Assembly: GCA_002269645.1 (NCBI GenBank)
Contig: NIVC01003366.1
Location: forward strand, 248 to 64,247
DNA: 64,000 bases
From: Macrostomum lignano
Taxonomy: Eukaryota
Direction of reading: 5' to 3'
The notes below the pieces were generated by a model. It ran no database searches and was not told the DNA's origin. It saw only the letters and a program-made list of their open reading frames with translations. The position numbers and the translations under genes were made by a program. Shown piece by piece: positions 3,267 through 62,928 of this stretch. Position 1 is the stretch's first letter. Every line of letters starts with the position of its first letter.

Positions 3267-24231
<20,965 letters not shown>

Positions 24232-27154: not shown

Positions 27155-27658
27155 ATGGCCGCCTCAGTGTCCGCTCCCATTGGCGACCCGTCGCAGGAGG
27201 ACAGCAAAGGCGACAGTCTCTGCTCTCGCTGCCTATTCGTTTTCAGCCTGCTTCTAATAGCCATGGCCTTTCCATTCTCCTTGATTTTCTGTCTCCGCGT
27301 GGTGACAGACTACGAGAGGGCGGTAGTGTTTCGCTTAGGCCGCGTGCTCGGTCAAGACGGCAAGGGTCCCGGGCTGTTCTTCGTGGTGCCCTGCTGCGAT
27401 CTGGTGCGAAAAGTCGACCTGCGCACCGTGACGTTCGACGTGCCACCACAGGAGGTGCTCACGAAGGACTCCGTGACGGTGGCAGTCGATGCCGTGGTGT
27501 TCTATCGGATCTTCAGTCCGGTAGTGAGCGTCACCAATGTTGAGGACGCCGACCGATCAACCCGGCTGCTGGCTCAGACAACGCTGAGAAACGTTCTGGG
27601 AACAAAGAATCTGTCGGAGATCCTGTCCGAGCGAGAGGGCATCAGCGGCATGATGCAG
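27155..27658 (+). CDS. STOM: Stomatin / band-7 (SPFH) protein, exon 1
   Basis: Motifs YERAVVFRLGR, GPGLFFVVPCCD, DLRTVTFDVPPQEVLTKDSVTVAVDAVV, LLAQTTLRNVLG; gccgccgccATGG Kozak at 27155; donor CAG|gtcggc. The frame is open upstream, so an N-terminal extension is possible. Confidence 0.92.
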
Positions 27659-27704
27659 GTCGGCTGGTGACTTCTGGGCTAGTGGCTTTCTTAGAAATTT
27701 GATG

Positions 27705-29365
27705 ACGCACCAAATCTGTTAATGTGGCACCAACCTGTGAATGTGGCACCAAATCTGTTAATGTGGCACCAACCTGTGAATGTGGCACCAAATCTGTTAA
27801 TGTGGCACCAAATCTGTTAATGTGGCACCAACCTGTGAATGTAGCTCCAAACCTGTAAATCTTAACACAAAATCTGTGAATGTGGCATCAAATCTGTGAA
27901 TGCTGCGCCATATCTGTGAATGTTGCACAAAATCTGTGAATGTAGCATCAAATCTGTGAATGTGGCACCAAATCTGTTAATGTGGCACCAAATCTATGAA
28001 TGTGGCATCAAATCTGTGAATGTGGCACTAAATCTGTGAGTTTGGCATCAAATCTGTGAGTGTGGCACCAAATCTGTTAATGTGGCACCAACCTGTGAAT
28101 GTAGCTCCAAACCTGTAAATCTTAACACAAAATCTGTGAATGTGGCATCAAATCTGTGAATGCTGGCCATATCTGTGAATGTTGCACAAAATCTGTGAAT
28201 GTAGCATCAAATCTGTGAATGTGGCACCAAATCTGTTAATGTGGCACTAAATCTATGAATGTGGCATCAAATCTGTAAATTTGGCACTAAATCTGTGAGT
28301 TTGGCATCAAATCTGTGAGTGTGGCACCAAATCTGTTAATGTGGCACCAACCTGTTAATGTGGCACCAACCTGTGAATGTGGCACCAAATCTGTTAATGT
28401 GGCACCAAATCTGTTAATGTGGCACCAACCTGTGAATGTAGCTCCAAACCTGTAAATCTTAACACAAAATCTGTGAATGTGGCATCAAATCTGTGAATGC
28501 TGCGCCATATCTGTGAATGTTGCACAAAATCTGTGAATGTAGCATCAAATCTGTGAATGTGGCACCAAATCTGTTAATGTGGCACCAAATCTATGAATGT
28601 GGCATCAAATCTGTGAATGCTGCGCCATATCTGTGAATGTTGCACAAAATCTGTGAATGTAGCATCAAATCTGTGAATGTGGCACCAAATCTGTTAATGT
28701 GGCACCAAATCTATGAATGTGGCATCAAATCTGTGAATGTGGCACTAAATCTGTGAGTTTGGCATCAAATATGTGAGTGTGGCACCAAATCTGTTAATGT
28801 GGCACCAACCTGTGAATGTAGCTCCAAACCTGTAAATCTTAACACAAAATCTGTGAATGTGGCATCAAATCTGTGAATGCTGGCCATATCTGTGAATGTT
28901 GCACAAAATCTGTGAATGTAGCATCAAATCTGTGAATGTGGCACCAAATCTGTTAATGTGGCACTAAATCTATGAATGTGGCATCAAATCTGTAAATTTG
29001 GCACTAAATCTGTGAGTTTGGCATCAAATCTGTGAGTGTGGCACCAAATCTGTTAATGTGGCACCAACCTGTGAATGTGGCACCAAATCTGTTAATGTGG
29101 CACCAAATCTGTTAATGTGGCACCAACCTGTGAATGTGGCACTAAATCTGTGAATGTGGCACCAAATCTGTGAATGTAGATCAAATCTGTGAATGTAGCG
29201 CCGAATCTGTGAATGTAGCGCCAAATCTGTGAATGTAGCGCTAAATCTGTGAATGTGGCATCAAATCTGTGAATGTGGCATCCTAAATCTGTGAATGTGG
29301 CACCAAATCTGTGAATGTAGCGCCAAATCTGTGAACTTGGCATTCAATCTGTAAATTTGGCACCA
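27705..29365 (+). repeat. 20-bp minisatellite aaatctgtgaatgtggcacc filling the stomatin intron
   Basis: Tandem copies with recurring variant blocks. Confidence 0.95.
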
Positions 29366-29397
29366 GATTTATTACAAAATTCATCCCTGCAATCCAG

Positions 29398-29766
29398 GAG
29401 TGCCTCGACCTGGCCACGGACCCGTGGGGCGTCAAGGTGGAGCGGGTGGAGATCAAGGATGTCCGCCTGCCAGTCGTGCTGCAGCGCGCGATGGCGGCCG
29501 AAGCGGAAGCGGCCAGGGAGGCGCGGGCGAAGGTGATCATGGCCGAGGGTGAGCAGCGAGCGTCCAAGGCTCTGCGCGATGCGGCAGCCGTGATTGAGCA
29601 GTCGCCGTTTGCTCTGCAGCTGCGGTATCTGCAGACTCTGAGCGCCATCTCTGCCGAGAAGAACTCAACCATCATTTTCCCGCTGCCAATGGAGGTTCTG
29701 GCTCACTTTGGCAGCGGTGGAGGCGTCTGCGGCGGTGCCCAAAAAACCGTCGAGAAGAAAGAGTGA
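29398..29766 (+). CDS. STOM: Stomatin / band-7 (SPFH) protein, exon 2
   Basis: aatccag|GAG phase-0 acceptor; LDLATDPWGVKVERVEIKDVRLP, QRAMAAEAEAAREARAKV, ALQLRYLQTL, EKNSTIIFPLP; TGA at 29764-29766. Confidence 0.92.
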   Translation, partial: ECLDLATDPWGVKVERVEIKDVRLPVVLQRAMAAEAEAAREARAKVIMAEGEQRASKALRDAAAVIEQSPFALQLRYLQTLSAISAEKNSTIIFPLPMEVLAHFGSGGGVCGGAQKTVEKKE

Positions 29767-29944
29767 GCTCAGCGAAACTGTACGGGTCTTGTGGTGACAG
29801 AAGCGGGACTGGAGCTGCAAACTTTGATTTTATTTTGTGAACCAATTGCGAATAAAGTCCGAAAATGGGCGCTCGATTATTGCGATCCAGAATATTTTTA
29901 TTGTCGATGTCAATTTGGTTTTAATATTGAAACATGTGTTGATG

Positions 29945-30180
29945 GTGAAGTGTGGGGAATGTGAAGTGTGGGGAATGTGAAGTGTGGGGAATGTGAAGTG
30001 TGGGGAATGTGAAGTGTGGGGAATGTGAAGTGTGGGGAATGTGAAGTGTGGGGAATGTGAAGTGTGGGGAATGTGAAGTGTGGGGAATGTGAAGTGTGAG
30101 GAATGTGAAGTCCGGGGAATATGAATTGTGGGGAATGTGAAGTGTGGTAAATGTGAAGTGGGGGGAATGTGAAGTCCGGG
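29945..30180 (+). repeat. 16-bp minisatellite gtggggaatgtgaagt
   Basis: Tandem copies. Confidence 0.93.
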
Positions 30181-32317
30181 GAAATTTAAAAAATATCCAC
30201 AGACAAAGCTAAATTTCACTATTAGTCGAACACAGAAACCTTTTATTTATTTCTAACAGCACTCTGCACTGGAATCTAATGACTTTTGATTGTGTACAGC
30301 AGAGGTTTGCAAGTACTGATAAATGTACTATAAGCTGTATGTCTGGTATTCGTAAATTTTTAAACCAAATAAACACCCACTTACGAGCTAAATTAGAATT
30401 CTGTACTGTAATGCTTTTGATGCTTTATTGAAGAATACTATTTTAGTGATAGCTCTACTAAAGAATCACCTGTCTTTTGCAGACGGCGGTGCGAAACGAA
30501 ATATTTTTTGTTTTCGCATTAATTAAATATATAAATCCAGCTCACACACAGGCATCTACATGTATCTGCATGTAGGAGAGTACATGTATCTCTATTGCGT
30601 AAAGAGTAATGCCTATTTTTCATAGTATATTGACCATTGCTGAGATGCCAATGGTCAATTGGGAGTTGTTGGTTGGCCAAGAAACAAAGGGAGAGTGAGG
30701 GGTAAATAAAGGCTTTGGTTATCTTAGCTTAAGAAACAAACAATGTTTCTTGAATGTGTAGAAGGTCAACAGTCACGTGTAGTTCATTCGTTCTTTTATT
30801 CCTTTCTTTATTGTCTCCCCAATGGGGGCGCAGATTGCTAGTCCACTATACTAAAAAAGATTTTTGGATATCTTCTTATCGAATCTTACTAATTACTTAG
30901 TAATTTTTGTTGTAACTTGCTCCTATGATATTCCGTCTACCTTTTTGTCACGTAACTTCACTTTCAATTATAGTGATATAATTCTAAGTAAGTTAATTGG
31001 CTGCACTGAACCCAAGGTTAATTAGCACCTGGTCCGTAATTACTCGTAAATGTATTGTAATTAATCAACTTAACGCAAGATACACGTAGCTTTGGAATTT
31101 TACGACTTAACGAATCAGTTGAGTTTGTACAATTATTTTGTTTGAGAAATTTGCAACACAGTGAAGGGAGTGCTTTCATTGTGCACTTCTCTTCTCTAGA
31201 AAAATCGATTAAAAGGCTAGGCAGCTATGCTTTCTCCACCAAAACCATTTGATCGGCGAAAAATTTTAAAATGAGCTTTTTTGCTTTAATTAGGGCTCTC
31301 AGTTTAAAAAGCCAAACGTTGAAATGCTGTGTAACTTAGTCAGACAAATATTGAACGCGGAGCGCTCAAGTAGACTTGAGCACACTAAAGTTTTGAGTAG
31401 CAAAGATACATGCAGCGATGGCATTTTGGCAAAACAAAATTTCAGTAATTCAGCCAGGAAGTTGGACCAGTGTGCAACGAAGCGGGTGTTAGGGTTCCCG
31501 CAGTCTGCTGGTGCACGCTAGGGCGCCGAGTCCTGGCGGTTTATGGTGCACTTCCGGATGAGCAGAGACCGGAGCAGTTGCTAATTGGAGCAATTATTCT
31601 CCAAGCTACAAAAGAGACAGTCAATATTCACTCAGGATGATGGGGTAGAAACCCATAACACTTTGTGGGCATTGTGGTGAGTTAGCGTGCAATATAGTTC
31701 CTCCAATATGCTCGTAAATGTATTGGCAGCCAAGGCACATCCGCATACATGTATGCGAATTATGGTTTTTTTTAATTTGACAGCATATGCCAGGCTGGGA
31801 AAAAGCAAGCATATAGGTAAAGCATAAACATGCATGTATTTCCTACCGATAAGCAGGGCCGGCGTATGACATAGTGTATGAATCTACATTCGAATTGCCC
31901 ACGGAAAAACAGACTGCTATTATGACAAATGAAGTAACAAAAATTTCAGCTTAAAAACAGAGATTTCCCATTAGTTATGATGACTCGCATTGGTTAATTT
32001 TGCTTTTATTAATTTAAAGCTTTCAAATGAGAGAGTGTTTAATGTTTCGCCACTTGGTATTGGAATCATGCCAGCCGCCTGCTGGGCTGGCGACTGCGGG
32101 GTCACGTGATGTGACAGCGGAATTTCCGCAGGCCGCTCCAGCGGCTGCCAGGGCTTTGTGGCAGGACCTAGTGCGATTTTAGCTCATCATCGGGGTACAC
32201 TACTGTGCCATTTAAATAAGTAGTGCACGAAAATTTTAAGCATCCAGAAAGTTTTATTTGACAAATATCTAATAACAAATGGATAAACATCTGATACATG
32301 TAGTTAAAAGAAATTTC

Positions 32318-32319
32318 TT

Positions 32320-32388
<69 letters not shown>

Positions 32389-32390
32389 GT
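32318..32390 (+). repeat. (TCTG)n microsatellite
   Basis: Direct repetition. Confidence 0.92.
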
Positions 32391-32480
32391 GTCTCAAAGA
32401 TGCAAAAGTGTGTCTCAGGAATGCTACAGTGTATCTCTATAAGTTCTGCGTCGTATAAAGCTGATGGGGTCTGGTGTCAC

Positions 32481-32815
32481 CTCTGCCGATTCGTCCAACG
32501 AATCGCAGGTCAGCGTATCGAGCCACCTAAGACTCCATCCAGGTCGCGTGATTCCTCAGCTTAGCGGAGCTGTCAATCTCATTCCCGGTGCTCAGAGTCA
32601 CCCTGGTACCGTCTGGCACGGACCCGAGGGCGAAAACTTTAAAATTCGTTCGGTAATTTTATGTTCAAACGCCAATGTCAGGGCAGAGCGGTGCAGATGA
32701 AGCTGGGATTGCCAGTTCTAACAAATCCGCATGAAGTTTTGAATTCGCAGCTCAACTGGTCATTTCTACTCTCGTAAAAATCAGCCAATTCAGCTGATTC
32801 AGCAGAATGGAAAAC
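32481..32815 (-). pseudogene. RUNX: Runt-domain (RUNX) pseudo-exon with two in-frame stops and a +1 frameshift
   Basis: Conceptual translation [80 protein letters not shown] aligns by eye with the Runt domain. TGA at 32680-32678, TAG at 32529-32527, extra T at 32641-32644; donor G|gtgaca at the conserved GRSGRG|KSF intron position. Confidence 0.85.
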
Positions 32816-32894
32816 TTGGATTGAAACAACTTTGAATAATTTTAAAAATGGGATCTTTGAAACAAATCACAAGGATTATCAAGAATAAAAAACG

Positions 32895-35800
32895 GCCAGG
32901 ATTTCCAAGAATTAAAGGAGATGATCGGAATTTCCAAGAATTAAAGGAGACGATTAGGATTTCCAAGAATTAAAGGAGATGATTAGGATTTCCAAGAATT
33001 AAAGGAGACGATTAGGATTTCCAAGAATTAAAGGAGACGATTAGGATTTCCAAGAATTAAAGGAGACGATTAGGATTTCCAAGAATTAAAGGAGACGATT
33101 AGGATTTCCAAGAATTAAAGGAGACGATTAGGATTTCCAAGAATTAAAGGAGACGATTAGGATTTCCAAGAATTAAAGGAGACGATTAGGATTTCCAAGA
33201 ATTAAAGGAGACGATTAGGATTTCCAAGAATTAAAGGAGACGATTAGGATTTCCAAGAATTAAAGGAGACGATTAGGATTTCCAAGAATTAAAGGAGACG
33301 ATTAGGATTTCCAAGAATTAAAGGAGATGATTAGGATTTCCAAGAATTAAAGGAGACGATTAGGATTTCCAAGAATTAAAGGAGACGATTAGGATTTCCA
33401 AGAATTAAAGGAGACGATTAGGATTTCCAAGAATTAAAGGAGACGATTAGGATTTCCAAGAATTAAAGGAGACGATTAGGATTTCCAAGAATTAAAGGAG
33501 ACGCTTAGGATTTCCAAGAATTAAAGGAGACGATTAGGATTTCCAAGAATTAAAGGAGACGATTAGGATTTCCAAGAATTAAAGGAGACGATTAGGATTT
33601 CCAAGAATTAAAGGAGACGATTAGGATTTCCAAGAATTAAAGGAGACGATTAGGATTTCCAAGAATTAAAGGAGACGATTAGGATTTCCAAGAATTAAAG
33701 GAGACGATTAGGATTTCCAAGAATTAAAGGAGACGCTTAGGATTTCCAAGAATTAAAGGAGACGATTAGGATTTCCAAGAATTAAAGGAGATGATTAGGA
33801 TTTCCAAGAATTAAAGGAGACGATTAGGATTTCCAAGAATTAAAGGAGACGATTAGGATTTCCAAGAATTAAAGGAGACGATTAGGATTTCCAAGAATTA
33901 AAGGAGACGATTAGGATTTCCAAGAATTAAAGGAGACGATTAGGATTTCCAAGAATTAAAGGAGACGATTAGGATTTCCAAGAATTAAAGGAGACGATTA
34001 GGATTTCCAAGAATTAAAGGACACGATTAGGATTTCCAAGAATTAAAGGAGATGATCAGGATTTCCAAGAATTAAAGGAGACGATTAGGATTTCCAAGAA
34101 TTAAAGGAGATGATTAGGATTTCCAAGAATTAAAGGAGACGATTAGGATTTCCAAGAATTAAAGGAGATGATTAGGATTTCCAAGAATTAAAGGAGATGA
34201 TTAGGATTTCCAAGAATTAAAGGAGATTATCGGAATTTCCAAGAATTAAAGGAGACGATTAGGATTTCCAAGAATTAAAGGAGACGATTAGGATTTCCAA
34301 GAATTAAAGGAGACGATTAGGATTTCCAAGAATTAAAGGAGATGATTAGGATTTCCAAGAATTAAAGGAGATTATCGGAATTTCCAAGAATTAAAGGAGA
34401 TGATTAGGATTTCCAAGAATTAAAGGAGATTATCGGAATTTCCAAGAATTAAAGGAGACGATTAGGATTTCCAAGAATTAAAGGAGACGATCAGGATTTC
34501 CAAGAATTAAAGGAGATGATTAGGATTTCCAAGAATTAAAGGAGACGATTAGGATTTCCAAGAATTAAAGGAGACGATCAGGATTTCCAAGAATTAAAGG
34601 AGACGATTAGGATTTCCAAGAATTAAAGGAGACGATTAGGATTTCCAAGAATTAAAGGAGACGATTAGGATTTCCAAGAATTAAAGGAGATGATTAGGAT
34701 TTCCAAGAATTAAAGGAGACGATCAGGATTTCCAAGAATTAAAGGAGACGATTAGGATTTCCAAGAATTAAAGGAGATTATCGGAATTTCCAAGAATTAA
34801 AGGAGACGATTAGGATTTCCAAGAATTAAAGGAGACGATTAGGATTTCCAAGAATTAAAGGAGACGATTAGGATTTCCAAGAATTAAAGGAGATGATTAG
34901 GATTTCCAAGAATTAAAGGAGACGATTAGGATTTCCAAGAATTAAAGGAGACGATTAGGATTTCCAAGAATTAAAGGAGACGATTAGGATTTCCAAGAAT
35001 TAAAGGAGACGATTAGGATTTCCAAGAATTAAAGGAGACGATTAGGATTTCCAAGAATTAAAGGAGATGATTAGGATTTCCAAGAATTAAAGGAGACGAT
35101 TAGGATTTCCAAGAATTAAAGGAGATGATTAGGATTTCCAAGAATTAAAGGAGACGATTAGGATTTCCAAGAATTAAAGGAGACGATTAGGATTTCCAAG
35201 AATTAAAGGAGACGATTAGGATTTCCAAGAATTAAAGGAGACGATTAGGATTTCCAAGAATTAAAGGAGACGATTAGGATTTCCAAGAATTAAAGGAGAC
35301 GATTAGGATTTCCAAGAATTAAAGGAGATGATTAGGATTTCCAAGAATTAAATGAGATTATCGGAATTTCCAAGAATTAAAGGAGATGATTAGGATTTCC
35401 AAGAATTAAAGGAGATTATCGGAATTTCCAAGAATTAAAGGAGACGATTAGGATTTCCAAGAATTAAAGGAGACGATCAGGATTTCCAAGAATTAAAGGA
35501 GATGATTAGGATTTCCAAGAATTAAAGGAGACGATTAGGATTTCCAAGAATTAAAGGAGACGATCAGGATTTCCAAGAATTAAAGGAGATGATTAGGATT
35601 TCCAAGAATTAAAGGAGACGATCAGGATTTCCAAGAATTAAAGGAGACGATTAGGATTTCCAAGAATTAAAGGAGATTATCGGAATTTCCAAGAATTAAA
35701 GGAGACGATTAGGATTTCCAAGAATTAAAGGAGACGATTAGGATTTCCAAGAATTAAAGGAGACGATTAGGATTTCCAAGAATTAAAGGAGATGATTAGG

Positions 35801-36260
35801 ATTTCCAAGAATTAAAGGAGACGATTAGGATTTCCAAGAATTAAAGGAGACGATTAGGATTTCCAAGAATTAAAGGAGACGATTAGGATTTCCAAGAATT
35901 AAAGGAGATGATTAGGATTTCCAAGAATTAAAGGAGACGATTAGGATTTCCAAGAATTAAAGGAGACGATTAGGATTTCCAAGAATTAAAGGAGACGATT
36001 AGGATTTCCAAGAATTAAAGGAGATGATTAGGATTTCCAAGAATTAAAGGAGACGATTAGGATTTCCAAGAATTAAAGGAGACGATTAGGATTTCCAAGA
36101 ATTAAAGGAGATGATTAGGATTTCCAAGAATTAAAGGAGACGATTAGGATTTCCAAGAATTAAAGGAGACGATTAGGATTTCCAAGAATTAAAGGAGACG
36201 ATTAGGATTTCCAAGAATTAAAGGAGACGATTAGGATTTCCAAGAATTAAAGGCGATTAG
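32895..36260 (+). repeat. 29-bp satellite ttaggatttccaagaattaaaggagacga (~115 copies)
   Basis: Highly homogeneous tandem array with no ORF in any frame; flanks are degenerate copies. Confidence 0.98.
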
Positions 36261-36888
36261 GATTTTCAGTTAGATAACTAAGATACGATCAGGATTTCTT
36301 AGAAGCAAGGATGATGAGGATATTGAAGAATCAAAAACGGCCAGGATTTCCGAGAAAAAAAGACGTTCAAATTTTCCAAGAATAGAATACAATCAGGATT
36401 TTCAGGAACCAGAGACGAACCGAATTCCCTATAGAAACACCAAAAAGATCAAGGTTTCATATTTTAATAGAAACAATTAAGACAATCAGAATTTCTAAAA
36501 GAAACAAAAACGCGAGGATAAAAGTTGAGATTACTGGGATATTCAACTATAACGATTTCAGGAATCCGGGGATTGGAGTTTGCAACGAAAATTTATGCAT
36601 GTACATCAGAATAAAACCAGTCAACTTCCGAATAAAGTATGTCTCACCATTTCCGCAAGTCATGCTCCAAATGAATTTTACTGAAGCCAGTAAGTCGGCC
36701 ACCATTTTGATTAAGATTCCGACTCAAGCAATGGGGATAATCCTGGGGAACTCGAAATTGTCGGGATGAGTTGGGAATCTAATAATTTGGGATCTGAAGC
36801 AGATTATATCTGAGCTTGGATTGAGAGATAATTCATGCAGCAAAAGCAAATGTGTAAAAGTTGTTAGAAAAAATCACTTTATTTTTAT

Positions 36889-38456: not shown

Positions 38457-40238
38457 CCAAGGACAACTTGATAACTCAGGACCGGAAACGAGCCAATTCA
38501 TGGCGAAAAAAGTGAGGCTCGTTTAAAAGCATTGTTCTATGGCCCATCCAAAGCTACGAAAGCGAAGAAATCTGAGCTGAAAATTGAGTTCTTCGCATGC
38601 ACTTGCAATTGAGAGAGAAAACTTTTATTCTTACTGAAACTAAATATCATGCCGATAAAATGCAGCGTCATTTTCTGTTGTGCAAACTACAATAGTAACC
38701 GTGATCGGAATGTTGCAGTATTTTCGTTTCCTAAAGATGCAACTGAACGAGAGGCTTGGCGACTGTCTCTACAGAAAAATACTGAAGCTGAGTGGACAGT
38801 GAGCGAGCCTGGAGCAAACACTTCACTATTTATCATAGTCAGCTCTTGTCCCGTTCTGACTGTTATTTTCCTCTCTGTTTGTAGTTCAGATGAAAAAAGA
38901 ATCGTAAATTTTTCTCGAGTTCCTTATACATGTGCTGCATGTACAGCTTTCCCATTGTGTATTTTCACGACGTTTACTTTTTGTGATAAAACTATTCAAC
39001 ATTTAAGAAAACCGACCCTGCACCCGCCTTCTGACTGCCTATCAAAAAGTCAAATATGATAAGAGTTTACATAGGCAACTGAAAGCATGCGCATACGGAT
39101 GGGCCATAGAACAATGGTAGATTGTATAGTATGCAACTGAGTTGAATAATGGCCAAAACTCGAGTGCGCGTAGCGCAAACTGCGGCTTTGTGGTCTATGG
39201 CCATTATTCAACTCAGTTGCATACTATACAAGTGCATTGTATTTATACTTTCACTCAGCGCTCAGTCATTATTCCACACTTTCTATCATGCTTCAATTGG
39301 CTGTTTTAAGAGTTGTTTTACCCATAGACGACTGAGTTGTGTGGCTTAGTTTGACCATAGACAACACTGTGATGAGTGCTGATTTTGCTTGCGTCTTGCA
39401 AGAAATCAGGAAAGCGAGTAGTGGGAGAAAAAGCTATTTGTCTTGTCAAACAACTATGGCTAGTGCATCTCGTCAAACAGCCGCGCTTATTAATTGAAAA
39501 AATCTTCCTGTCGACGACTGAACGAACCGTGCGGCGCTACCTAGGAAGAAAACGCGACCATGCAGTCTTCAACGCCTCGACGGCTATAAACGATGCCTGA
39601 AAGCGGCCAATCGATTCAGTCGAGCAGCCGACAGTCCCAAAGAATCCCAGCTTGGATACTGCGGTACCAAAGAAGCTCATCAGACGCATGCCAACTTAAC
39701 CAAGTCGTGCATCTTTCAAATGGTAAGTTCGGCAACTATACTTGAGCACCTGTATTTCTCTTTCATAGAAAACATTCAACATAGACCAACTCCTTTTGCA
39801 GTGCCAAATCATCAGGCTAAAGTGTCGAGCATCTTTGGAAACTGCGGCTTTGAGAACTGTGTATGCTTCACTTTGGGTGACAAATTGATTTTTACATTGT
39901 CAAATTTCGACTACAAACTGATGAACTGCACTAGCTGTGACATTTATTATTAACTCTTTTCGTGTAGCTGGTACTTTAGTTTTAATGATTTATCCTTTTT
40001 GTTCATTTACTTCTTGTTTTTCTGTATTTATTAACAAAAATACTGAGCGATGGATTTTTTCAATCCAAATGTCTATGGATTGAAAGAGTTTCACACATCA
40101 AAACTGTGGAATAATGGCCAAAATATTTTTTCATTGCGTCTGGGTAAAAGTATAATTACAATGCTTTTAAACGAGCCTCATACTTTTTTCGCCATGAATT
40201 GGCTCGTTTCCGGTCCTGAGTTATCAAGTTGTCCTTGG
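38457..40238 (+). mobile_element. Non-autonomous DNA transposon with ~80-bp TIRs and a decayed THAP-domain ORF (P-element-like; superfamily uncertain)
   Basis: 38457-38535 and 40158-40238 are inverted copies differing by one 2-bp indel. ORF 38649 reads MPIKCSVIFCCANY...VFSFPKD...EAW; SKHF follows in a shifted frame. No clean TSD. Confidence 0.75.
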
Positions 40239-42513: not shown

Positions 42514-43260
42514 TCAAAGAGAGGACAAACTTCTGAGCAGGCAGTCCAGACTCAAGCGCTGCTCAGGATCAGGCCTAATCAACCGCAGCACCAAATTGTA
42601 CATGGAATCCAGCATCGCCTGCGGCTTATCGATGAGTCCACTCTCCAGCAGTCTCAGCTTCTCAGCCTCATCCTCGGCGCTATCCATGGAAGCTGGAATC
42701 CGTCTCCCAGCCGCCTCGATCAGGCACAGGCCAAGCGAGTAATTGTCAACCAGACGAGCATCCGGATGGCGCTGAAGGTCCAGCGCGTCCATCGGCATGA
42801 ACCGGCCAGCGCCATCCTCCAGATTGTCAATATCGCGCCAGTCTCGGGCGTGTCCGAAATCGCCCAGCTTGAAAATCAGTCGGTCAACTCGCGATGCGGC
42901 CAGCCTGGCTAGGGAGGCGCGCCTCGCTAACGGCGCCAGACTCGGCGGCAGGCTGGCGCGCGGCGCCTTCAACAAGATATTGCCAGTGCTGCAGTCCAGA
43001 TGCGCCAAGCCCTCGGAGTGCATAAACTCTAGGGCGCTGCCAATTTCCAAGCCTAATTGACGCTGGCGATGAGGCGGCAGGTGGCGACGCTGCTGAGGCG
43101 CTGACAGGCTGGTGAGCTGCTCGTCTGCCAGGTAGGAGGCCAGACAGAGGCCGTTGCAGAACTCCAGCTGGATGTACAGCCGGTCGAACTGGACCCAGCA
43201 GCCGTAGTAGGACACAATATTGGGATGGTGCTCGCTGAGACTGGCCATGGCCCACAGCTC
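42514..43260 (-). CDS. WEE1: Wee1-family kinase, exon 2 (catalytic C-lobe)
   Basis: ccgcag|GAG acceptor; ELWAMA, HPNIVSYY, LYIQLEFCNG, HLDCSTGNIL, FKLGDFGH, EDGAGRFM, DNYSLGLCLIEAAG; stop at 42516-42514. Confidence 0.85.
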   Translation of the reverse strand, partial: ELWAMASLSEHHPNIVSYYGCWVQFDRLYIQLEFCNGLCLASYLADEQLTSLSAPQQRRHLPPHRQRQLGLEIGSALEFMHSEGLAHLDCSTGNILLKAPRASLPPSLAPLARRASLARLAASRVDRLIFKLGDFGHARDWRDIDNLEDGAGRFMPMDALDLQRHPDARLVDNYSLGLCLIEAAGRRIPASMDSAEDEAEKLRLLESGLIDKPQAMLDSMYNLVLRLIRPDPEQRLSLDCLLRSLSSL

Positions 43261-43600
43261 CTGCGGATATGCGTATGTGAATTATATACCGATATGTATC
43301 GAAAATACAAATTAAATCAACAGTAGCCCAGTGGTCAAGCATGGAGCTTTGATGTCACATTAATTAACGGCCTTGATGGGCAACTCCCAATTCACACTGA
43401 AGTGTACATGCCTATAACGATAAATAAAGTTAGGGCCGCTGTACACTCCTATGTGAGTGTGTGCCTGCTCAGGGGAGTCGGCGGAATGGTCGCCTAAAGT
43501 GTGCCAGTGTGCACACAGCTCCGTTTCTCTAAATAACCACAAAACAAAATCCCCTGGCACTAATAACAATAAGAATTGACAAACAATGACAAATCCTCAC

Positions 43601-44866
43601 CTGAATTCCTTCTCGAGTCTGCGCAGACGCGGTCGGGCCATCTCTATGCTTCCTAGTTTGAGCAGTTTTGATGCAGTAGATGCAGCCATCCAGCCGGTTG
43701 ATAGCGGAGAACACGTAGCCAAAGGAGCCGCTGGCCAGCTGCCTCGTGTTGGCCAGGTCAGTCAAGTCGAATTCCTTCGACAGACGGTCCGAATTCAACA
43801 GTCGCTCGTCCACCACTCGACCCCAGCCGGAGCCGCTGTTGCTGGCGCCGACGGAGTTCGAACTGCTACTAACGGAGGCCGACGGATTGCCGCAGCTCAG
43901 CCGGCGTCGGCCGTCCGGAGTGCAGCGGTTGATGTTGGAACCGGACAGGCGGCTCAGCACGCCTGACTGTCTGTACATTCGGAGCTGAGCAGCTCGCAAT
44001 GTCTGCAACAACTGATCGGAAGCAGACTGGTGCATTGTAGCTGGGGAGGGATGATGCTGCTGCGATGGCGCCACTTGCTGGTGATGCTGGGCCTGCTGAG
44101 CATGACTACGCGTCATCAGATACTTCGGCGGCGGCATCAGCAGAGCGTCGGGGTCGACCGGATTAGCGGGGGCGGCAGCGGCAACAGCTTTGCTATTGTT
44201 ATTTTCGCTTTGTTGCTCGTCATCTTCGTCGAATGTTAAAACTCGATTAACGGCCAGATTGTTGCTTCCAGTTTGCTGCTGCTGCTGTTGCTGCTTTGAG
44301 TAGCCAAGCATGAGCATCTTAGCTGGCGCCGTCTGCAGCTGGTTATTACTAAATCGACGCAACCGTCTGGACAGCATATTTCGCTCCTCGGCGACAATTC
44401 TAAAGAACTGGTTGGCCTGTTCGCGAACCACCGGCAGGTCGCTGCTGCCGCTGCTGCCTCCCACGCTGCAGTCTCCGGCTCCGCCAGCCGCTCCGATGCC
44501 AAGCAAGGAGCCACTGCTAACAGACGATGGAGGCGTTGTTGGAGACGGAGTCGACAAACCGACAGGATTGTTGGCAGCAGCCACTGCCTGCTGATGCTGG
44601 GGCTTGACGCCAGCAGCCTCGCTAACAAGCGATGGTATTCGAGCTTGTCGAACTTGGCGATACCGAAGTCCCAGTGGGGTCGACAGGGCCGGATGATGCA
44701 ACAGGTATTGAGAGTCCAGCTGCTGAGGCGGTGTTGCCGCATCGTCTGCAACACCTACAGCTGCCGCTGATGCCTCTGTTGGTGCAACCGCTTGATCAGC
44801 GTCTGAGAGACAGCAGACCTCCATTTCCATGGAGCAGTGCTGAGATGTGTCATCAGATATGTCCAT
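43601..44866 (-). CDS. WEE1: Wee1-family kinase, exon 1 (disordered regulatory region + N-lobe)
   Basis: LASGSFGYVF Gly loop; NRLDGCIYCIK (Wee1-specific RLDGCIYAIK); several S/T-P sites; first ATG at 44866; donor CAG|gtgagg. Confidence 0.85.
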
Positions 44867-47800
44867 GTTTGAGTTGCTAGCATACAAAATCGTCCTCACT
44901 TTGCAATGAAAATGGCTGGAAAAGGTCAATTATATACTTTAACATTCCACTGTAATTTTACCTCAAAATCAATAAAAATACCAACATCTCTACCCTACCA
45001 ATTACACTGCTAAGCATCTGGCTTAGCAGCCAGATGAATAATAATAAACTATTATTACTATAATAAACTATATAAACAACTTATAAACAACATTTAATTA
45101 CTTATACTAATAATTTCTTGCTAAATAATAAAAAATATTTTAACATTGCTTTGTCATTTATGCTCTTATCCATTTAAATATAATGAATGGAATGCTTGAG
45201 CAATAAAAAATATTTAATGCAATTTAACACTTAAACAAGTAGATTTATTAATACAATCTTGACCATGTGCATGTTAACTTTAGTTGTATTTTTTATCTTG
45301 TCACAACTAGAAAATAAAAAGGTTTTTCTTTGTTTTGTTTATGTTTTGAATAATTTAAACATTGAAAAAATGCATTCAGCTTGTTTTTTAAACAAGAAAA
45401 GCTACTTTTTATTGATGGCAACCACTTCCTAGTTTTTTGGGATTACAGTTATTTTGGTAAAAAGACATTTTGTTAACAATTGTTTTGGCAACAAGCAATA
45501 AAGTCATTTTAGAATTCCAATTATAAGATCTTTGGTAATAATCATTTTAGAAAAAAATATCAAAAGTGAAAACTTACTTTATTATCTTTTTAATTTAAAT
45601 GGAATTTTAGAAATAAATGAAATATAAAAATCAACAAAAATAACTATAAACTAATATTATAAAATGCCTATCACTAAAATGACTATTAACTAAATAATTC
45701 ATTTTTAGTATGTTTGTCATAAAAGCAACTTTATTACCTAAATGACTATTTGTTATTTATATTCATTTATTATACTAAGTGTACAGGTGCCAGTTGATTT
45801 GGTGACAAGTTGCTTCTATGATAGACACATTTCACCTTTGGTGAAAAATGGAAGATTTGGTGAGTTGGTCATTTTAGTGATAGGACTTCACTTCACATAA
45901 TATTAGTTTGTAATTATTTCTATATTGTATATATCTTAAAATTTCTATTGAAAAATGAGTTGCCCTATTTTGAAAAAAAAATTGAATTAACATATTGTTT
46001 CATTTTTTGCAGATTGTTTCCCATTTTTTCCCAGAATATTCAGACATTTAAACCTAGACTAAAGGCTCTATGTTTATGAGGATCCTTATGAAATGAGAAA
46101 AGCAATAAGTCTATGGAGGTTTGGAAGTTACAATAAATATAAAAGACTGCAACTGTATGAAGTCAATAAACAAAATCAAATAAATCAATACTTTACTATT
46201 TTATAACAATCTAAGCTTTTAGGCTTTATTTAACTTAAGATTGGCAGGATAATTTTATGCTAAAAACTATAACAGCTATCATCAAAAGGTCTTCTTCAAA
46301 AGTCAGGAAAATGACTTTTGCTTATTACTAGAACAATTGTCATTAAGACATTCTGTTACAAAAAATTTTTAATTTAAATGTACAATGTTAGTTTAGAAAG
46401 TCTAGCATATAGGCCAATATAAAAAATAAAAAAAATTTTAATATAGGCCTTAGCCCTATAGTCTAGAATACTTAGTGCATATGTAAACAAAAATTGAATA
46501 GTTACAAATGCATATAAAAAAAAATTAGTGCATGCCTACTCTAAAATCTATGCTAGGCCTAGTGTTGCAACAATAAATGACATTTTTGTATTGTGACAAT
46601 AAATACCTTTGTGTATTACATAAAGAATATTTTTTGGCAGATAATATGGTTGCTTTTTATCCTTACCTATACTAGGGGCCTATCTATAGTGGAAAATTTA
46701 TATGTATAAACTGAACAAACATTTGTTTAAATGCTATGTTACAAGCTTAAAAATTGGAATGATTAAAATTTATAACTTAGGGCCTATATAGAATAGGCCC
46801 TAGCCTATACTATACTTGACTAGACTAGGGCCTAAAGGTAAAGTAAAAAAAACTAACAAAATCATTGCGACTTTTTTAAGTTAAAGTTTTAAGCTTCTAG
46901 TTTTAGACTAGAATTGACATTTTTTATTATTTTAAACATTAAGCTTAATCAATGTTTTAATTACTCTGCTCTAGGCCTTATTACCTATTTATTACTTGGT
47001 CATTTTGTAGACTAGAAATGTTAATGGATAGACAAATAAATAGGCCCAATTCTTAAATAAAGTCAACATAACCATAAGGATAATGTAGGGCCTATATAAA
47101 AGCATATATTAATATTTGTCAGACTTAAAGAAGTGCCAGGCCAATAAAAGCACACCAAGACCATTAAAATATTGCCTTTTCTTACTATTCTGTTTGTTGT
47201 CTAAAGCAAAAAAGCATAGGGCCCAGGCCTACTGTGACTCGCCTTTGACTGGCTGTGACCTGTGAGTAGGCCCTACTATACTAGGCCTACTTATGCGATA
47301 CTCCTTCGTCCTTAATAGGTTTTAGTCACAAGCAAACTAGGGCTGGGTTCGTCCAGAGCTAGGTCTACTAAAAGCTCTAGGGCAATAACTAGGCCTACTA
47401 ACATGACAAAAGTTGAGAATAGGCTATCTAGGCCTAGGAGGAAGGTTACAGGTTACTCTCGACGCATTAAATAAATAAATATACAACAAAATCTACGAAC
47501 ACAACGAAGCCTTTACTATATATATTTTCCACTATGTAGACTAAACTACTTGTCTGCATCGTACGTAATGACATGCATTTGACTGTAAAGATGTAGGCCC
47601 TATAGTATTATTATAAGAGGAACAATTCGGCTTGTCGCTGTACAGTCACGTGCATATATTTAACTAATTTTAAAAAAGTCTTAAACTAAAACAAAATAGA
47701 CGTCAAAGTCAGCTTTTTTATTAAATATAAAATATGATAATCAAATTTTTTTAGTTATAAAACAAGTATTCATATGCATTTCTTGTACATCATGCTATCC

Positions 47801-49529: not shown

Positions 49530-51725
49530 AAACCCCAATCTTCACACAATCTCCACTCTTCACACAATCCCCAATCTTCACACAATCCCCAATCTTCACA
49601 CAATCTCCATTCTTCACACAATCCCCAATCTTCACACAATCTCCATTCTTCACACAATCCCCAATATTCACACAATCCCTAATCTTAACACAATCCCTAA
49701 TCCTCACACAATCCCTAATCCTCACACAATTCCTATTCCACACTCAATCCCTAATCTTCACACAATCCCTATTCTTCACACAATCCCTAATCCTCATACA
49801 ATCCCCACTCTTCCCACAATCCCTAATCTTCCCACAATCCCTAATCTTCACACAATCCCTAATCCTCATACAATCCCCACTCTTCACACAATCCCTAATC
49901 TTCACACAATCCCTAATCCTCATACAATCCCCACTCTTCACAAAATCCCTAATCTTCACACAATCCCTAATCCTCATACAATCCCCACTCTTCACACAAT
50001 CCCTAATCTTCACACAATCCCTAATCTTCACACAATCCCTAATCCTCATACAATCCCCACTCTTCACACAATCCCTAATCTTCACACAATCCCTAATCCT
50101 CATACAATCCCTAATCCTCATACAATCCCCACTCTTCACACAATCCCTAATCTTCACACAATCCCTAATCTTCACACAATCCCTAATCCTCATACAATCC
50201 CCACTCTTCACACAATCCCTAATCTTCACACAATCCCTAATCCTCATACAATCCCTAATCCTCATATAATCCCCACTCTTCACACAATCCCTAATCTTCA
50301 CACAATCCCTAATCCTCATACAATCCCCACTCTTCACACAATCCCTAATCTTCACACAATCCCTAATCCTCATACAATCCCTAATCCTCATACAATCCCC
50401 ACTCTTCACACAATCCCTAATCTTCACACAATCCCTAATCTTCACACAATCCCTAATCTTCACGCAATCCCTAATCCTCATACAATCCCCACTCTTCACA
50501 CAATCCCTAATCTTCACACAATCCCTAATCCTCATACAATCCCTAATCCTCATACAATCCCCACTCTTCACACAATCCCTAATCTTCACACAATCCCTAA
50601 TCCTCATACAATCCCTAATCCTCATACAATCCCCACTCTTCACACAATCCCTAATCTTCACACAATCCCTAATCTTCACACAATCCCTAATCCTCATACA
50701 ATCCCCACTCTTCACACAATCCCTAATCTTCACTCAATCCCTAATCCTCATACAATCCCTAATCCTCATACAATCCCCACTCTTCACACAATCCCTAATC
50801 TTCACACAATCCCTAATCCTCATACAATCCCCACTCTTCACACAATCCCTAATCTTCACACAATCCCTAATCCTCATACAATCCCTAATCCTCATACAAT
50901 CCCCACTCTTCACACAATCCCTAATCTTCACACAATCCCTAATCTTCACACAATCCCTAATCCTCATACAATCCCCACTCTTCACACAATCCCTAATCTT
51001 CACACAATCCCTAATCCTCATACAATCCCCACTCTTCACACAATCCCTAATCTTCACACAATCCCTAATCCTCATACAATCCCTAATCCTCATACAATCC
51101 CCACTCTTCACACAATCCCTAATCTTCACACAATCCCTAATCTTCACACAATCCCTAATCCTCATACAATCCCCACTCTTCACACAATCCCTAATCTTCA
51201 CACAATCCCTAATCCTCATACAATCCCCACTCTTCACACAATCCCTAATCTTCACACAATCCCTAATCCTCATACAATCCCCACTCTTCACACAATCCCT
51301 AATCTTCACACAATCCCTAATCCTCATACAATCCCTAATCCTCATACAATCCCCACTCTTCACACAATCCCTAATCTTCACACAATCCCTAATCTTCACA
51401 CAATCCCTAATCCTCATACAATCCCCACTCTTCACACAATCCCTAATCTTCACACAATCCCTAATCCTCATACAATCCCCACTCTTCACACAATCCCTAA
51501 TCTTCACACAATCCCGAATCCTCATACAATCCCTAATCCTCATACAATCCCCACTCTTCACACAATCCCTAATCTTCACACAATCCCTAATCTTCACACA
51601 ATCCCTAATCCTCATACAATCCCCACTCTTCACACAATCCCTAATCTTCACACAATCCCTAATCCTCATACAATCCCCACTCTTCACACAATCCCTAATC
51701 TTCACACAATCCCTAATCCTTATAC
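49530..51725 (+). repeat. 18-bp minisatellite aatcttcacacaatccct / actctt / aatcctcat variants
   Basis: Tandem copies; source of the 806-aa TIPNLH ORF. Confidence 0.96.
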
Positions 51726-52062: not shown

Positions 52063-53144
52063 CAGGGGTTGGCAAACTCCGGCCTGAGGGCCAAATGTGC
52101 CCCGCAAAGCCTCTCTATCCGGCCCTTGGGTCCTTTAAATCTTCACAATAGCAATCCGGCCCGCTCGATGTTTGTGTCTCTTCTCAGCTCTCTCTTCTCA
52201 TAGTCTCCTCTAATCTCCTCTCCGCTCCTCTCCTCACCTCTCATCTTCTCACCTCTGTCCTCTCCTCTCATCTCCACACCTATCTCCTCTCCTCATCTCT
52301 CTCCTCTCCTCTTATCTCCTCACCTCTCTCCTCTCCTCTCATCTCCTCAACTCTCTCCTCTAATTTCTTATCCTCTCCTCTCATCTCCTCACCTCTGTCC
52401 TCTCCTCTCATCTCCACACCTATCTCCTCTCCTCACCTCTCTCCTCACCTCTCATCTCCTCACCTATCTCCTCTCCTCATCTCTCTCCTCTCCTCTTATC
52501 TCCTCACCTCTCTCCTCTCCTCTCATCTCCTCAACTCTCTCCTCTAATTTCTTATCCTCTCCTCTCATCTCCTCAACTCTGTCCTCTCCTCTCATCTCTT
52601 TACCTATCTCCTCTCCTCTCTTCTTTCCTCTCATTTCCTCACCTCTCTCCTCTCCTCTCCTCTCCTCTCTCCTCGCCTCTCATCTCCTCAACTCTATCCT
52701 CACCTCTCATCTCCTCACCTCTATCCTCTCCCCTCATCTCTTTACCTATCTCCTCTCCTCTCATCTCCTCTCCTTTCCTATCCTATCCTCTCATCTCCGT
52801 TTTCTCTCCATTCTCTTCTCCCTTCCCTCCTCTCTCCTCTTCTTATCTCCTGTCTCATTAATTTCGACTCTCCACTCCTCATTCATCTCCCCTCTCCTCT
52901 CTCTTCTCCTATGTTATCTCTCTTCTTGTCTACTCTCTTCTCCTTTATTCCTTCGCCTCTCCATTCTCCTGCGCTCGTATTTCTGTTCTCCATTCCCCAT
53001 CCTCTCTCCCTATAGCCCGCAGTCATCAGGGATTCCTGGGCGCGCATTTCGCTTAGGGGGCCCAGCGAAGCGGACCGATGCAGAAGGGCAGTCAGGCTGT
53101 TCTCAATCTTCTGGCCCTTGAGGTAAAAAGTTTGCTGACCCCTG
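52063..53144. mobile_element. hAT-type MITE filled with CT-rich low-complexity sequence
   Basis: TIRs caggggttggcaaact / agtttgctgacccctg; 8-bp flanks tactaaaa / cactaaaa (7/8 match); subterminal ggcc(c/t) motifs. Confidence 0.8.
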
Positions 53145-55409: not shown

Positions 55410-56210
55410 TCAATTCTCGGGCAGTCGTCTTGAGGTGCACATTACAACAATATTGTACAGCAGTTCGATCACTTCTACAATGCAGACAAAAGTCAAGCCA
55501 ACCCAGATTGACAGCAGGCCGCCGATCTGACTCAGCAGCGAGGTGAGCGAGATCACCGCTTTCTCTTCGATTCTTTCAATATCGAAATTCGATTTGCCTC
55601 GATTGATTAAAATCTCGATGAAGTTGTTCTGCACATAGTCAATCTCCCGCAGCATCCTGTTGGCTTCAGTCTGGTTGGTCTGAGCCATTCGGTAGACTGG
55701 CTCATACAACCGCTTCAGATCCTGATAGATTGGCTCCAGGTACGACGCTGAGCTCCTACGCACCTGTCGACTTTCGATTCGAGATTTAATTGCTGCGAAA
55801 TCGTTGACAAATTCGTACAGGTAGGCCTTGGTCGGCCAGTTTGTAGTGCTGATTGTCGTGTCGTAGCTGTAGAATGTGCACGGCGTGAAGCACTTGTCGA
55901 TGGTGACCTCGTCGGCTTTGATGAATACCTCCATGTTGCAGGTGACTCGACTTAGGAAGGCTTTGAACTCCGCGTCGCTGATGAAGCTGGGCAGCTGGAT
56001 GCTGTCGGTCTGGACGCCGTAGAACTTGGCGAGCCTGTGCCGAGTTTCACTGGTGAGCGAGTTGGACAGCACGGTGGCGTTCTTCACCAAGGAGAACTGC
56101 GGGTCCGGGATGCGACCGCAGTAGTCGGCTTTGCTGTGCTGCAGCGAGTCGGGCAAGGGGATCGTGCTGTCCAGGCAGCCGCACTGCCTGTGGATTTGCT
56201 CGTGAAGAAG
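55410..56210 (-). CDS. DEG/ENaC subunit, last exon (Cys-rich thumb, TM2)
   Basis: ttgcag|CTT phase-0 acceptor; QCGC, CFTPC, YDTTIS, SLTSLLSQIGGLLSIWVGLTFVCIVEVIEL; TGA at 55412-55410. Confidence 0.9.
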   Translation of the reverse strand, partial: LLHEQIHRQCGCLDSTIPLPDSLQHSKADYCGRIPDPQFSLVKNATVLSNSLTSETRHRLAKFYGVQTDSIQLPSFISDAEFKAFLSRVTCNMEVFIKADEVTIDKCFTPCTFYSYDTTISTTNWPTKAYLYEFVNDFAAIKSRIESRQVRRSSASYLEPIYQDLKRLYEPVYRMAQTNQTEANRMLREIDYVQNNFIEILINRGKSNFDIERIEEKAVISLTSLLSQIGGLLSIWVGLTFVCIVEVIELLYNIVVMCTSRRLPEN

Positions 56211-56615
56211 CTGCAAGGCCAGTCAAAGTGGTAAAAATCGACATGATGGCTGCACCCGTACATTAACGTTGTGAATTGAATTGTGTAGCAAACCTTAAAA
56301 ATGTAGTTTGTCACAGGGACCTTTGAGCATTAATCAAGTCGGCCCTGAGAATGCACACGCACACGGAATTTCACATGGATATGTCGTAAGGCGTGTCCTT
56401 TGGGACCTCTTGAGAGAACCTCTTTGCGTGCAGAGACGGCTCTCACAAATGATATTTTTTGAGCAATTTGCATTTTCACTCCTGAGATTCAATCCTTAAG
56501 GAGCGTAAAGTTAGGATTGTGATATAGCACACAATTCTCTATCATCCTAAAACGATTGCGCAACACTACTTGAACACACCCCACTCCTAGGCTGCACTCC
56601 TTGCAAGAACTCCTG

Positions 56616-57564: not shown

Positions 57565-58462
57565 CTGGCTCCTAACTCTTAACTCCTGAAATCTATAGCA
57601 CACAAAAGTCAATCACTCCTTGTCAAGAGTACTCTTGAGTCCTAGCTCCTAACTCCTGATTCTATAGCACGGGCCCCAGAATTTCCGTCAGCGTTGGTTG
57701 TTAGACAGCTACTAGCAAAACAGCAATTGAGTGACGAACCGCACATCGACTCGACCCAGAGCTCAAGCAGTCATCTAGCCCCCAGAAAAAGATAGGATAA
57801 CCTACATTTAGTGAAAATACTATTGCAATTAAAGTGCTCGCCAAGCCCGCCAAGAGACTTTGGGTAGTGCCGGAAAAAAGAAAGACTTTTTTATTAGCTG
57901 CTTGGCATGACTTGACTTAGATTGGATTTTCACTATATTACTAACTCATATTATTTTTATACGGCTACTGCCTGCTGCCTTCGCCCACTATATGATTCCC
58001 TCTCGAATGAAAAGTTTCACTTGCCCGGGCAACATACGGAATTCTGCAAAGAGATCGTCTCGAGAGTCTTGCCGCATGTTTTCAAGAGAAGAGAAGAGAG
58101 TGGATTCGGAGAGTTGGAGAGTACGAGCTAAGAGTTGAAATGCTGCGCGCTACTCAACGGCCGGGGGTCACGGCGATAACCGACTTGCTAATTCAATTTT
58201 TTTATTTTACAGAAAATCTGAGCATTCCAGATATTGAGCAGCACAACCGTTGGCCTTGGTTGCGCGTGCTGCTAAGGAGAGATATGGAAATTTGAGGTAT
58301 GACCATATTGGCCTGTATTGACTTAGCTCTAGTGAAGTACGAATAATACCCCATTTTCAAAGCACGAATTCTTTTATAGCCACAAATGTCCAGTCTAGAA
58401 AGAGAGCATGTGATGCTGAACCTTGTTGAGTATCTGCTTGTGAGTTCGTTAATCGGGGCGTT

Positions 58463-60525
58463 TCACAAGCTCAAATCTTCACAAGATTGGATCTTCACAA
58501 GCTCGAATCCTCATAAGCTCGAATCTTCACAAGATTGGATCTTCACAAGCTTGAATCCTCACAAGATCGAATCTTTACAAGCTCGAATCCTCACAAGCTC
58601 GAATCTTCACAAGCTCGAATCTTCACAAGCTTGAATCTTCACAAGCTCGAATCTTCACAAGCTCGAAACTTCACAAGCTCGAATCTTCACAAGCTCGAAT
58701 CCTCACAAGCTCGAATCTTCACAAGCTCTAATCCTCACAAGCTCGAATCTTCACAAGATTGGATCTTCACAAGCTCGAATCTTCACAAGCTCGAATCTTC
58801 ACAAGCTCGAATCTTCACAAGCTCGAATCCTCACAAGCTCGAATCTTCACAAGATTGGATCTTCACAAGCTCGAATCCTCACAAGCTCGAATCTTCACAA
58901 GCTCGAATCTTCACAAGCTCGAATCCTCACAAGCTCGAATCTTCACAAGCTCGAATCCTCACAAGCTCGAATCTTCACAAGCTCGAATCTTCACAAGCTC
59001 GAATCTTCACAAGCTCGAATCTTCACAAGCTCGAATCTTCACAAGCTCGAATCCTCACAAGCTCGAATCTTCACAAGATTGGATCTTCACAAGCTCGAAT
59101 CCTCACAAGCTCGAATCTTCACAAGCTCGAATCTTCACAAGCTCGAATCCTCACAAGCTCGAATCTTCACAAGATTGGATCTTCACAAGCTCAAATCTTC
59201 ACAAGCTCAAACTTTACAAGCTCGAATCTTCACAAGCTCGAATCTTCACAAGCTCGAATCTTCACAAGCTCGAATCTTCACAAGCTCGAATCTTCACAAG
59301 CTCGAATCCTCACAAGCTCGAATCTTCACAAGCTCGAATCTTCACAAGCTCGAATCCTCACAAGCTCGAATCTTCACAAGATTGGATCTTCACAAGCTCG
59401 AATCATCACAAGCTTGAATCTTCACAAGCTCGAATCTTCACAAGCTCGAAACTTCACAAACTCGAAACTTCACAAGCTCGAATCTTCACAAGCTCGAATC
59501 CTCACAAGCTCGAATCTTCACAAGCTCGAATCTTTACAAGCTCGAATCTTCACAAGCTCGAATCTTCACAAGCTCGAATCTTCACAAGCTCGAATCCTCA
59601 CAAGCTCGAATCTTCACAAGATTGGATCTTCACAAGCTCGAATCCTCACAAGCTCGAATCTTCACAAGCTCGAATCTTCACAAGCTCGAATCCTCACAAG
59701 CTCGAATCTTCACAAGATTGGATCTTCACAAGCTCAAATCTTCACAAGCTCAAACTTTACAAGCTCGAATCTTCACAAGCTCGAATCTTCACAAGCTCGA
59801 ATCTTCACAAGCTCGAATCTTCACAAGCTCGAATCTTCACAAGCTCGAATCCTCACAAGCTCGAATCTTCACAATATTGGATCTTCACAAGCTCGAATCT
59901 TCACAAGCTCGAATCTTCACAAGATTGGATCTTCACAAGCTCGAATCATCACAAGCTTGAATCTTCACAAGCTCGAATCTTCACAAGCTCGAAACTTCAC
60001 AAACTCGAAACTTCACAAGCTCGAATCTTCACAAGCTCGAATCCTCACAAGCTCGAATCTTCACAAGCTCGAATCTTCACAAGCTCGAATCTTCACAAGC
60101 TCGAATCCTCACAAGCTCGAATCTTCACAAGATTGGATCTCCACAAGCTCGAATCTTCACAAGATTGGATCTCCACAAGCTCAAATCTTCACAAGCTCAA
60201 ACTTTACAAGCTCGAATCTTCACAAGCTCGAATCTTCACAAGCTCGAATCCTCACAAGCTCGAATCCTCACAAGCTCGAATCCTCACAAGCTCGAATCCT
60301 CACAAGCTCGAATCCTCACAAGCTCGAATCCTCACAAGCTCGAATCCTCACAAGCTCGAATCCTCACAAGCTCGAATCCTCACAAGCTCGAATCCTCACA
60401 AGCTCGAATCCTCACAAGCTCGAATCTTCACAAGCTCAAACTTCACTAGGTCGAATCCTCACAAGCTCGAATCTTCACAAGATTAGATCTTCACAAGCTT
60501 TAATCTTCACAAGCTCGAAACTTCA
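58463..60525 (+). repeat. 16-bp minisatellite cacaagctcgaatctt in the DEG/ENaC intron
   Basis: Tandem copies; a block duplication of 543-bp period (59079 vs 59622). Confidence 0.96.

Positions 60526-62469: not shown

Positions 62470-62928
<459 letters not shown>

Follow-up and report, generated by a model that had tools for sequence, protein, structure and literature searches.

Introduction

RUNX genes have been duplicated and lost many times, and both outcomes are well known across animals (PMC2527000). Expansions of the family include runt, lozenge, RunxA and RunxB of insects, RUNX1-3 of vertebrates and the runt paralogs of flatworms; in planarians and Stenostomum, several of these paralogs are wound-response genes (bioRxiv 10.64898/2026.07.29.741434). 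The Runt domain itself is interrupted by an intron that was kept from cnidarians to vertebrates and is followed by a second Runt exon of 105 bp (PMC2527000). In the flatworm Macrostomum lignano, the homeologs left by a recent genome duplication differ by about 1.1% of their coding sequence, with a unimodal distribution (PMC10733133).

Here we describe a decayed Runt-domain exon (the relic) in a 64-kb stretch of M. lignano DNA, referred to as the window. As in the expansions above, RUNX appears to have been duplicated in the Macrostomum lineage, but in contrast to the runt paralogs that planarians and Stenostomum have kept, the Macrostomum duplicate in the window appears to have been lost. A decayed RUNX duplicate in M. 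lignano is a fresh instance of a familiar phenomenon. The relic resembles the M. lignano RUNX gene (A0A1I8IS99 and the near-identical A0A1I8FEE9 and A0A1I8IJ69), with which it shares the species, the content of the N-terminal Runt exon, a convergent stomatin neighbour and a number of rare residues (F4, LPN, DGTRVTL, GNE and S68, in the numbering of the exon alignment). The intact gene differs from the relic in having the whole Runt domain as well as a C-terminal tail, and it ends in a VWKPY-type motif.

The relic also shares the hallmarks of non-processed pseudogenes and exon relics, namely duplication at the DNA level, a parental intron boundary and neighbourhood, nonsense and frameshift lesions, and deletions. 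Compared with a typical annotated pseudogene it is more eroded, with a single exon left, and otherwise there is nothing unusual about it. Processed pseudogenes are likewise dead copies of coding genes, but the relic differs from them at its downstream boundary, as described below.

Results

A disabled Runt-domain exon

A tblastn search of the window with the Runt domain of RUNX1 returned two adjoining segments in different frames, 32725-32642 (which includes LP*HWR) and 32643-32473 (which includes ES*VARY), with a joint E=9e-21; no other match in the 64 kb rose above noise. From these segments a conceptual peptide of 111 residues was built, with X at both stops and one T of the T4 run removed. 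This peptide matches the Pfam Runt profile PF00853 with E=6.6e-31 (107 bits, against a cutoff of 27 bits) and the solved Runt domains of RUNX1 and RUNX2 with E~3e-26 in a search of PDB sequences. A preliminary description, made from the DNA letters alone, had proposed a Runt-domain exon at this place and had named the PF00853 search in advance as one that might refute it; the Runt match obtained, together with the other two comparisons, upholds the proposal. The domain is incomplete, with the relic covering profile positions 9-93 of 129 (a full domain has about 128 aa), and the 36 unmatched positions past it correspond to the room needed for a 105-bp exon.

The same description had listed a TGA in LP(S/T)HWR, a TAG at the conserved Gln, and an extra T that shifts the frame. 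All three were recovered by the codon walk at the positions given in Table 1, amounting to three disabling lesions per 111 codons and one indel in 333 bp. It had also held that the intron position of the family is retained, and this agrees with our finding that homology stops at GRIGRG, directly before a GT. An alternative genetic code with TAG read as Gln, as in ciliates, was rejected, since this is the nuclear genome of a flatworm and the neighbouring genes use standard stops.

Table 1. Coordinates of the relic, its lesions and the surrounding features of the window
Feature	Position	Strand	Basis
Relic RUNX exon, first two-thirds of the Runt domain plus about 26 upstream codons	32482..32814	minus	tblastn, Pfam, PDB sequence search, codon walk
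In-frame TGA at the S/T of LP(S/T)HWR	32678..32680	minus	tblastn, codon walk
In-frame TAG at the conserved Gln of NQVA(K/R)F	32527..32529	minus	tblastn, codon walk
T4 run (AAAA on the plus strand) with one extra base; +1 frameshift between LPNEF and KVFALG	32641..32644	minus	tblastn, codon walk
GT right after GRIGRG, former splice donor at the conserved intra-Runt-domain intron position	32480..32481	minus	sequence; intron conservation PMC2527000
AG after a pyrimidine-rich stretch, plausible former splice acceptor	32815..32816	minus	sequence
Gap of about 2.6 kb from relic donor to stomatin 3' end, expected place of the remaining RUNX exons	29870..32481	minus	tblastn, motif and coding scans
(TCTG)n microsatellite, 88 bp downstream of the relic exon	32316..32394		tandem-repeat scan
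29-bp minisatellite, 116 copies, 96% matches, directly upstream of the relic	32898..36265		tandem-repeat scan
Intact two-exon stomatin/band-7 gene, 290 aa, convergent with the relic, synteny anchor	27155..29766 (exons 27155-27658, 29398-29766)	plus	sequence comparison
DEG/ENaC (amiloride-sensitive sodium channel, PF00858) gene, two large exons	55410-56216, 60538-61785	minus	Pfam
Protein kinase gene	42514-43248, 43529-44929	minus	Pkinase E=1.9e-21 (C-terminal lobe)
ORF starting with a THAP-type zinc-finger motif (PF05485)	38649-39059	plus	23.5 bits, just below the 23.9 cutoff
ORF with a phospholipid scramblase domain (PF03803), C-terminal half of the profile	6792-7574	minus	E=2.1e-9

Missing exons and repeat surroundings

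We searched for the rest of the gene with human and M. lignano RUNX sequences, including the M. lignano RUNX tail. Neither the second Runt exon, nor the C-terminal tail, nor a WRPY/VWKPY-type motif was found in positions 1-32481 by motif scans or by tblastn up to E=1000. The gap between the relic and the stomatin gene contains no RUNX exon traces and no coding signal, and the sequence that follows the GT of the relic (DTRPHQLYTTQNL*) shows no relation to RUNX. Formally, the remainder of the gene could still lie more than 32 kb downstream, outside the window and past several other genes.

Because the similarity stops at the intron, the relic is not a retrocopy. A processed pseudogene was rejected on the same grounds, with similarity ending at the intron position with a GT, no next exon and no poly(A); the signs that a retrocopy would carry, continuity over the former exon junction and a poly(A) remnant, are absent at the relic.

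On its upstream side the relic borders directly on 3.4 kb of a 29-bp minisatellite with the unit AGGATTTCCAAGAATTAAAGGAGACGATT, which might fill the former site of a 5' exon or promoter. Neither the gap towards stomatin nor the region upstream of the minisatellite shows transposon features or coding potential beyond the borderline THAP ORF about 6 kb away. We found no transposase or terminal repeats adjoining the relic, and within the window there is neither a second copy of the exon nor any copy of its flanks, dispersed repeats included.

An intact RUNX gene with the same stomatin neighbour

The relic peptide gave no match in a word-indexed protein search. An exhaustive HMMER search with it returned 859 RUNX proteins, none of them more than 59% identical. 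The intact RUNX of M. lignano is A0A1I8IS99, to which the relic is about 58-60% identical. This 927-aa protein is a chimeric model, in which an intact Runt domain and a short tail run on into a spliced stomatin mRNA translated in antisense. Its residues 262-343 match the relic with 60% identity, and residues 465-699 align antisense to the two stomatin exons of the window with 81% and 66% identity; residues 344-464, which hold the second Runt exon and the C-terminal tail, have no counterpart in the window. Since its pieces map to the relic and to antisense stomatin, the model reveals a second M. lignano locus with the same convergent layout of RUNX and stomatin, where the transcripts of the two genes seem to meet or overlap.

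Two further M. lignano models, A0A1I8FEE9 and A0A1I8IJ69, have a Runt core identical to that of A0A1I8IS99, and the former ends in a VWKPY-type motif. The three are probably near-identical homeologs of the intact RUNX gene. The public models of this gene look flawed in general: besides the fusion of RUNX to antisense stomatin in A0A1I8IS99, the N-terminal stretches of A0A1I8FEE9 and A0A1I8IJ69 resemble frameshifted translations of the Runt exon.

The stomatin gene of the window is intact and has an AATAAA past its stop. Its coding sequence has no stop or frameshift, and the product agrees with M. lignano A0A1I8GV02 in 289 of 290 residues, whereas its identity to other M. lignano stomatins is only about 76%; this match identifies the window as DNA of M. 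lignano, a hidden polyploid flatworm. The one difference (GGGVC versus GGGGC near the C-terminus) suggests that A0A1I8GV02 comes from a homeolog or from another assembly. The single intron of the window gene consists almost wholly of a 20-bp minisatellite (83 copies, 27707-29365). For the intact-RUNX locus, the stomatin was reconstructed from chimeric A0A1I8IS99 by minimum nucleotide change and translated in its true frame; the protein obtained is 79-92% identical to that of the window and stands closer to it than to any other M. lignano paralog. No RUNX was found beside a more distant M. lignano stomatin paralog on contig NIVC01002425.1 of the Mlig_3_7 assembly. That paralog spans 12.5 kb, compared with 2.6 kb for the window gene, and its region (77590-108259 of the contig) has dispersed repeat families in common with the window (for example at window positions 6078-6224 and 52101-52294).

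The simplest reading is that one duplication of a RUNX-stomatin block explains both loci. Because the locus of the intact RUNX is paralogous and shares this convergent layout, the relic is classed as a non-processed duplicate pseudogene. The preliminary description had called it a duplicate, and the presence of intact A0A1I8IS99 in the same species is in line with that.

Loss of constraint in the relic

The relic was set against 212 unique RUNX sequences, all trimmed to the 85 residues in question; 39 columns of this comparison are conserved to 95% or more. Seven of the 39 are broken in the relic, while the 212 real RUNX sequences break 0.34 on average and five at most. Four of the seven broken columns are 100% conserved, and the residues that the relic carries there never occur in the 212 sequences: K->I in HWR-x-NK, N->D in GND-x-N, F->Y in A-x-F-x-DLRF and S->I in GRSGRG. 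The M. lignano RUNX, which is intact though divergent, breaks four columns, all by conservative changes that are seen elsewhere. It had been proposed that the DNA-contact arginines survive in the relic; those of HWR, VAR, DLRF and GR.GRG do, but the first of these four changes replaces the invariant lysine of HWR-x-NK.

Overall, the relic is 58% identical to A0A1I8IS99 and has a median identity of 53% to the other RUNX sequences. With 83 decayed residues at near-equal identity to all RUNX, and long-branch effects to be expected, a count of shared rare residues was preferred to a tree. In this count A0A1I8IS99 ranks first of 213, with six rare residues compared with five for the runners-up, unrelated taxa that evolve fast, Artemia and Steinernema for example; the link is therefore only slightly stronger than that to some unrelated divergent RUNX.

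Age of the duplication and of the inactivation

Stomatin in the window and at the intact-RUNX locus differs in at least 9-12% of coding nucleotides and in 8-21% of amino acids, values that are a parsimony lower bound derived from chimeric A0A1I8IS99, an imperfect annotation. Set against the coding divergence of about 1.1% between recent homeologs, this indicates that the duplication of RUNX and stomatin is far older than the neopolyploidy.

Neutral decay was simulated by placing random substitutions on the back-translated exon of A0A1I8IS99. About 55-60 hits were needed to reach the roughly 33 amino-acid differences observed, and these produced about 1.5 stop codons on average. The two stops of the relic are therefore uninformative on how recently it was inactivated, since this is close to the number expected at the observed divergence. 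The preliminary description had taken the gene to be recently inactivated, and this part of it did not hold up: a single exon survives, its identity to the intact gene is 58-60%, four positions that are otherwise 100% invariant carry unique replacements, the linked stomatin genes are diverged well past the homeolog level, and the stops match the neutral expectation. Some period of constraint after the duplication is nevertheless allowed by the data, since fully neutral decay might have left more than one indel in 333 bp, and since the AG and GT at the two ends of the exon survive.

Other features of the window

The window is unusually rich in repeats, with tandem repeats scoring 400 or more making up about 34% of positions 1-64000. 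They include (TCTG/CAGA)n tracts of 440-570 bp (2331-2818, 11504-12075 and 62488-62927), a (CTAA)n tract (22707-23225), and minisatellites of 1-2.4 kb with units of 12 to 54 bp (14989-17352, 18872-19928, 49533-51718 and 58462-60525). The last of these, a 2-kb array of a 16-bp unit, lies in the intron between the two DEG/ENaC exons, which jointly cover PF00858 positions 1-303 and 305-455. In the kinase gene the C-terminal lobe is encoded in one exon, and the domain begins in the last part of an upstream exon that is long, rich in Gln and of low complexity. The THAP ORF could be a domesticated or decaying gene derived from a transposase.

Discussion

We propose that the relic is an old, non-processed and non-functional pseudogene relic, the one surviving exon of a M. 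lignano RUNX gene, and we consider this reading highly probable. Several other readings have to be weighed against it. A gene that was functional until lately, and that has taken only its first disabling mutations, would fit the low number of lesions (three in 111 codons), the AG and GT that are still present and the survival of most DNA-contact arginines; M. lignano is, moreover, a neopolyploid, whose redundant copies should be dying off at present (PMC10733133). Against this, all the other exons are missing from the window, identity to the intact paralog is 58-60%, and the relic violates more invariant columns than any real RUNX sampled. With stomatin paralogs about tenfold more diverged than recent homeologs, and with two stops being what neutral decay to this extent would produce, we regard recent inactivation as quite unlikely. 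Closely related to it is the idea that the recent duplication gave rise to both loci, that of the window and that of A0A1I8IS99 being its S and L subgenome copies, one of them degenerating unusually fast. Gene order and orientation are indeed the same at both loci, and large indel differences between homeologs have been reported for this genome (PMC10733133), but the stomatin divergence, in nucleotides and in amino acids alike, stands far apart from the unimodal value of about 1.1%, and A0A1I8IS99, A0A1I8FEE9 and A0A1I8IJ69 already look like the homeolog set of the intact gene. We judge this idea very unlikely.

That the stops and the frameshift are errors of assembly or sequencing in a functional gene is extremely improbable. 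The extra T does sit in a homopolymer, a typical site of long-read error, and the frameshift-like artefacts of A0A1I8FEE9 and A0A1I8IJ69 indicate that M. lignano assemblies hold indel errors; however, the TGA and TAG are base substitutions rather than indels, and, as had been argued in the preliminary description, they count against a homopolymer error alone. Invariant residues are also replaced by ones never seen in RUNX. A mis-assembled live gene is unlikely because, in addition to these two substitutions, the other exons are gone and the neighbouring genes are clean, as the stomatin match to A0A1I8GV02 illustrates; and since the nearby coding sequences (stomatin and the long open DEG/ENaC and kinase exons) carry no such damage, a general assembly error is also an unlikely cause of three lesions within 111 codons. 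Equally hard to credit is that a transposon or exon shuffling captured and moved the exon, with no connection to decay in place. A lone exon between a (TCTG)n tract and a 3.4-kb minisatellite, with a THAP-domain ORF some 6 kb away, might suggest such an event, but the relic lies in the same synteny and orientation with stomatin as the intact gene does, its flanks have no dispersed-repeat copies in the window, and neither a transposase nor terminal repeats adjoin it.

For the preferred reading of an old pseudogene relic, we infer the following course of events. An ancestral block carrying RUNX and a convergent stomatin gene would have been duplicated well before the recent genome duplication of M. 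lignano, after which stomatin was presumably kept functional at both loci and RUNX was kept intact at one (A0A1I8IS99 and its near-identical copies). At the window locus RUNX would have lost its function and then drifted. Its downstream exons, with the second Runt exon, the C-terminal tail and the VWKPY-type motif, may have been deleted or eroded past recognition, and the upstream side probably turned into the 3.4-kb minisatellite, while the remaining exon would have gained two nonsense substitutions, a 1-bp insertion and replacements at invariant positions of the DNA-binding domain.

The relic most likely has no present function. It is unlikely, though conceivable, that the lost copy was a second, functionally distinct runt paralog, much like the several wound-induced ones of planarians and Stenostomum, or that the exon is still transcribed within a non-coding RNA overlapping the 3' end of stomatin.

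On the interpretation of an old relic, M. lignano formerly had at least one RUNX locus more than today, and the loss would predate the recent polyploidisation. The value of the finding lies mainly in annotation: the relic should not be counted as a RUNX gene, nor as a new casualty of the genome duplication, and the UniProt model A0A1I8IS99 is exposed as chimeric. For the study of flatworm regeneration it provides a single data point on how runt paralogs, canonical genes of the wound response, are gained and lost. If the lost copy was functionally distinct, M. lignano, a flatworm that is unable to regenerate its head, would have one documented difference in its set of wound-response genes.
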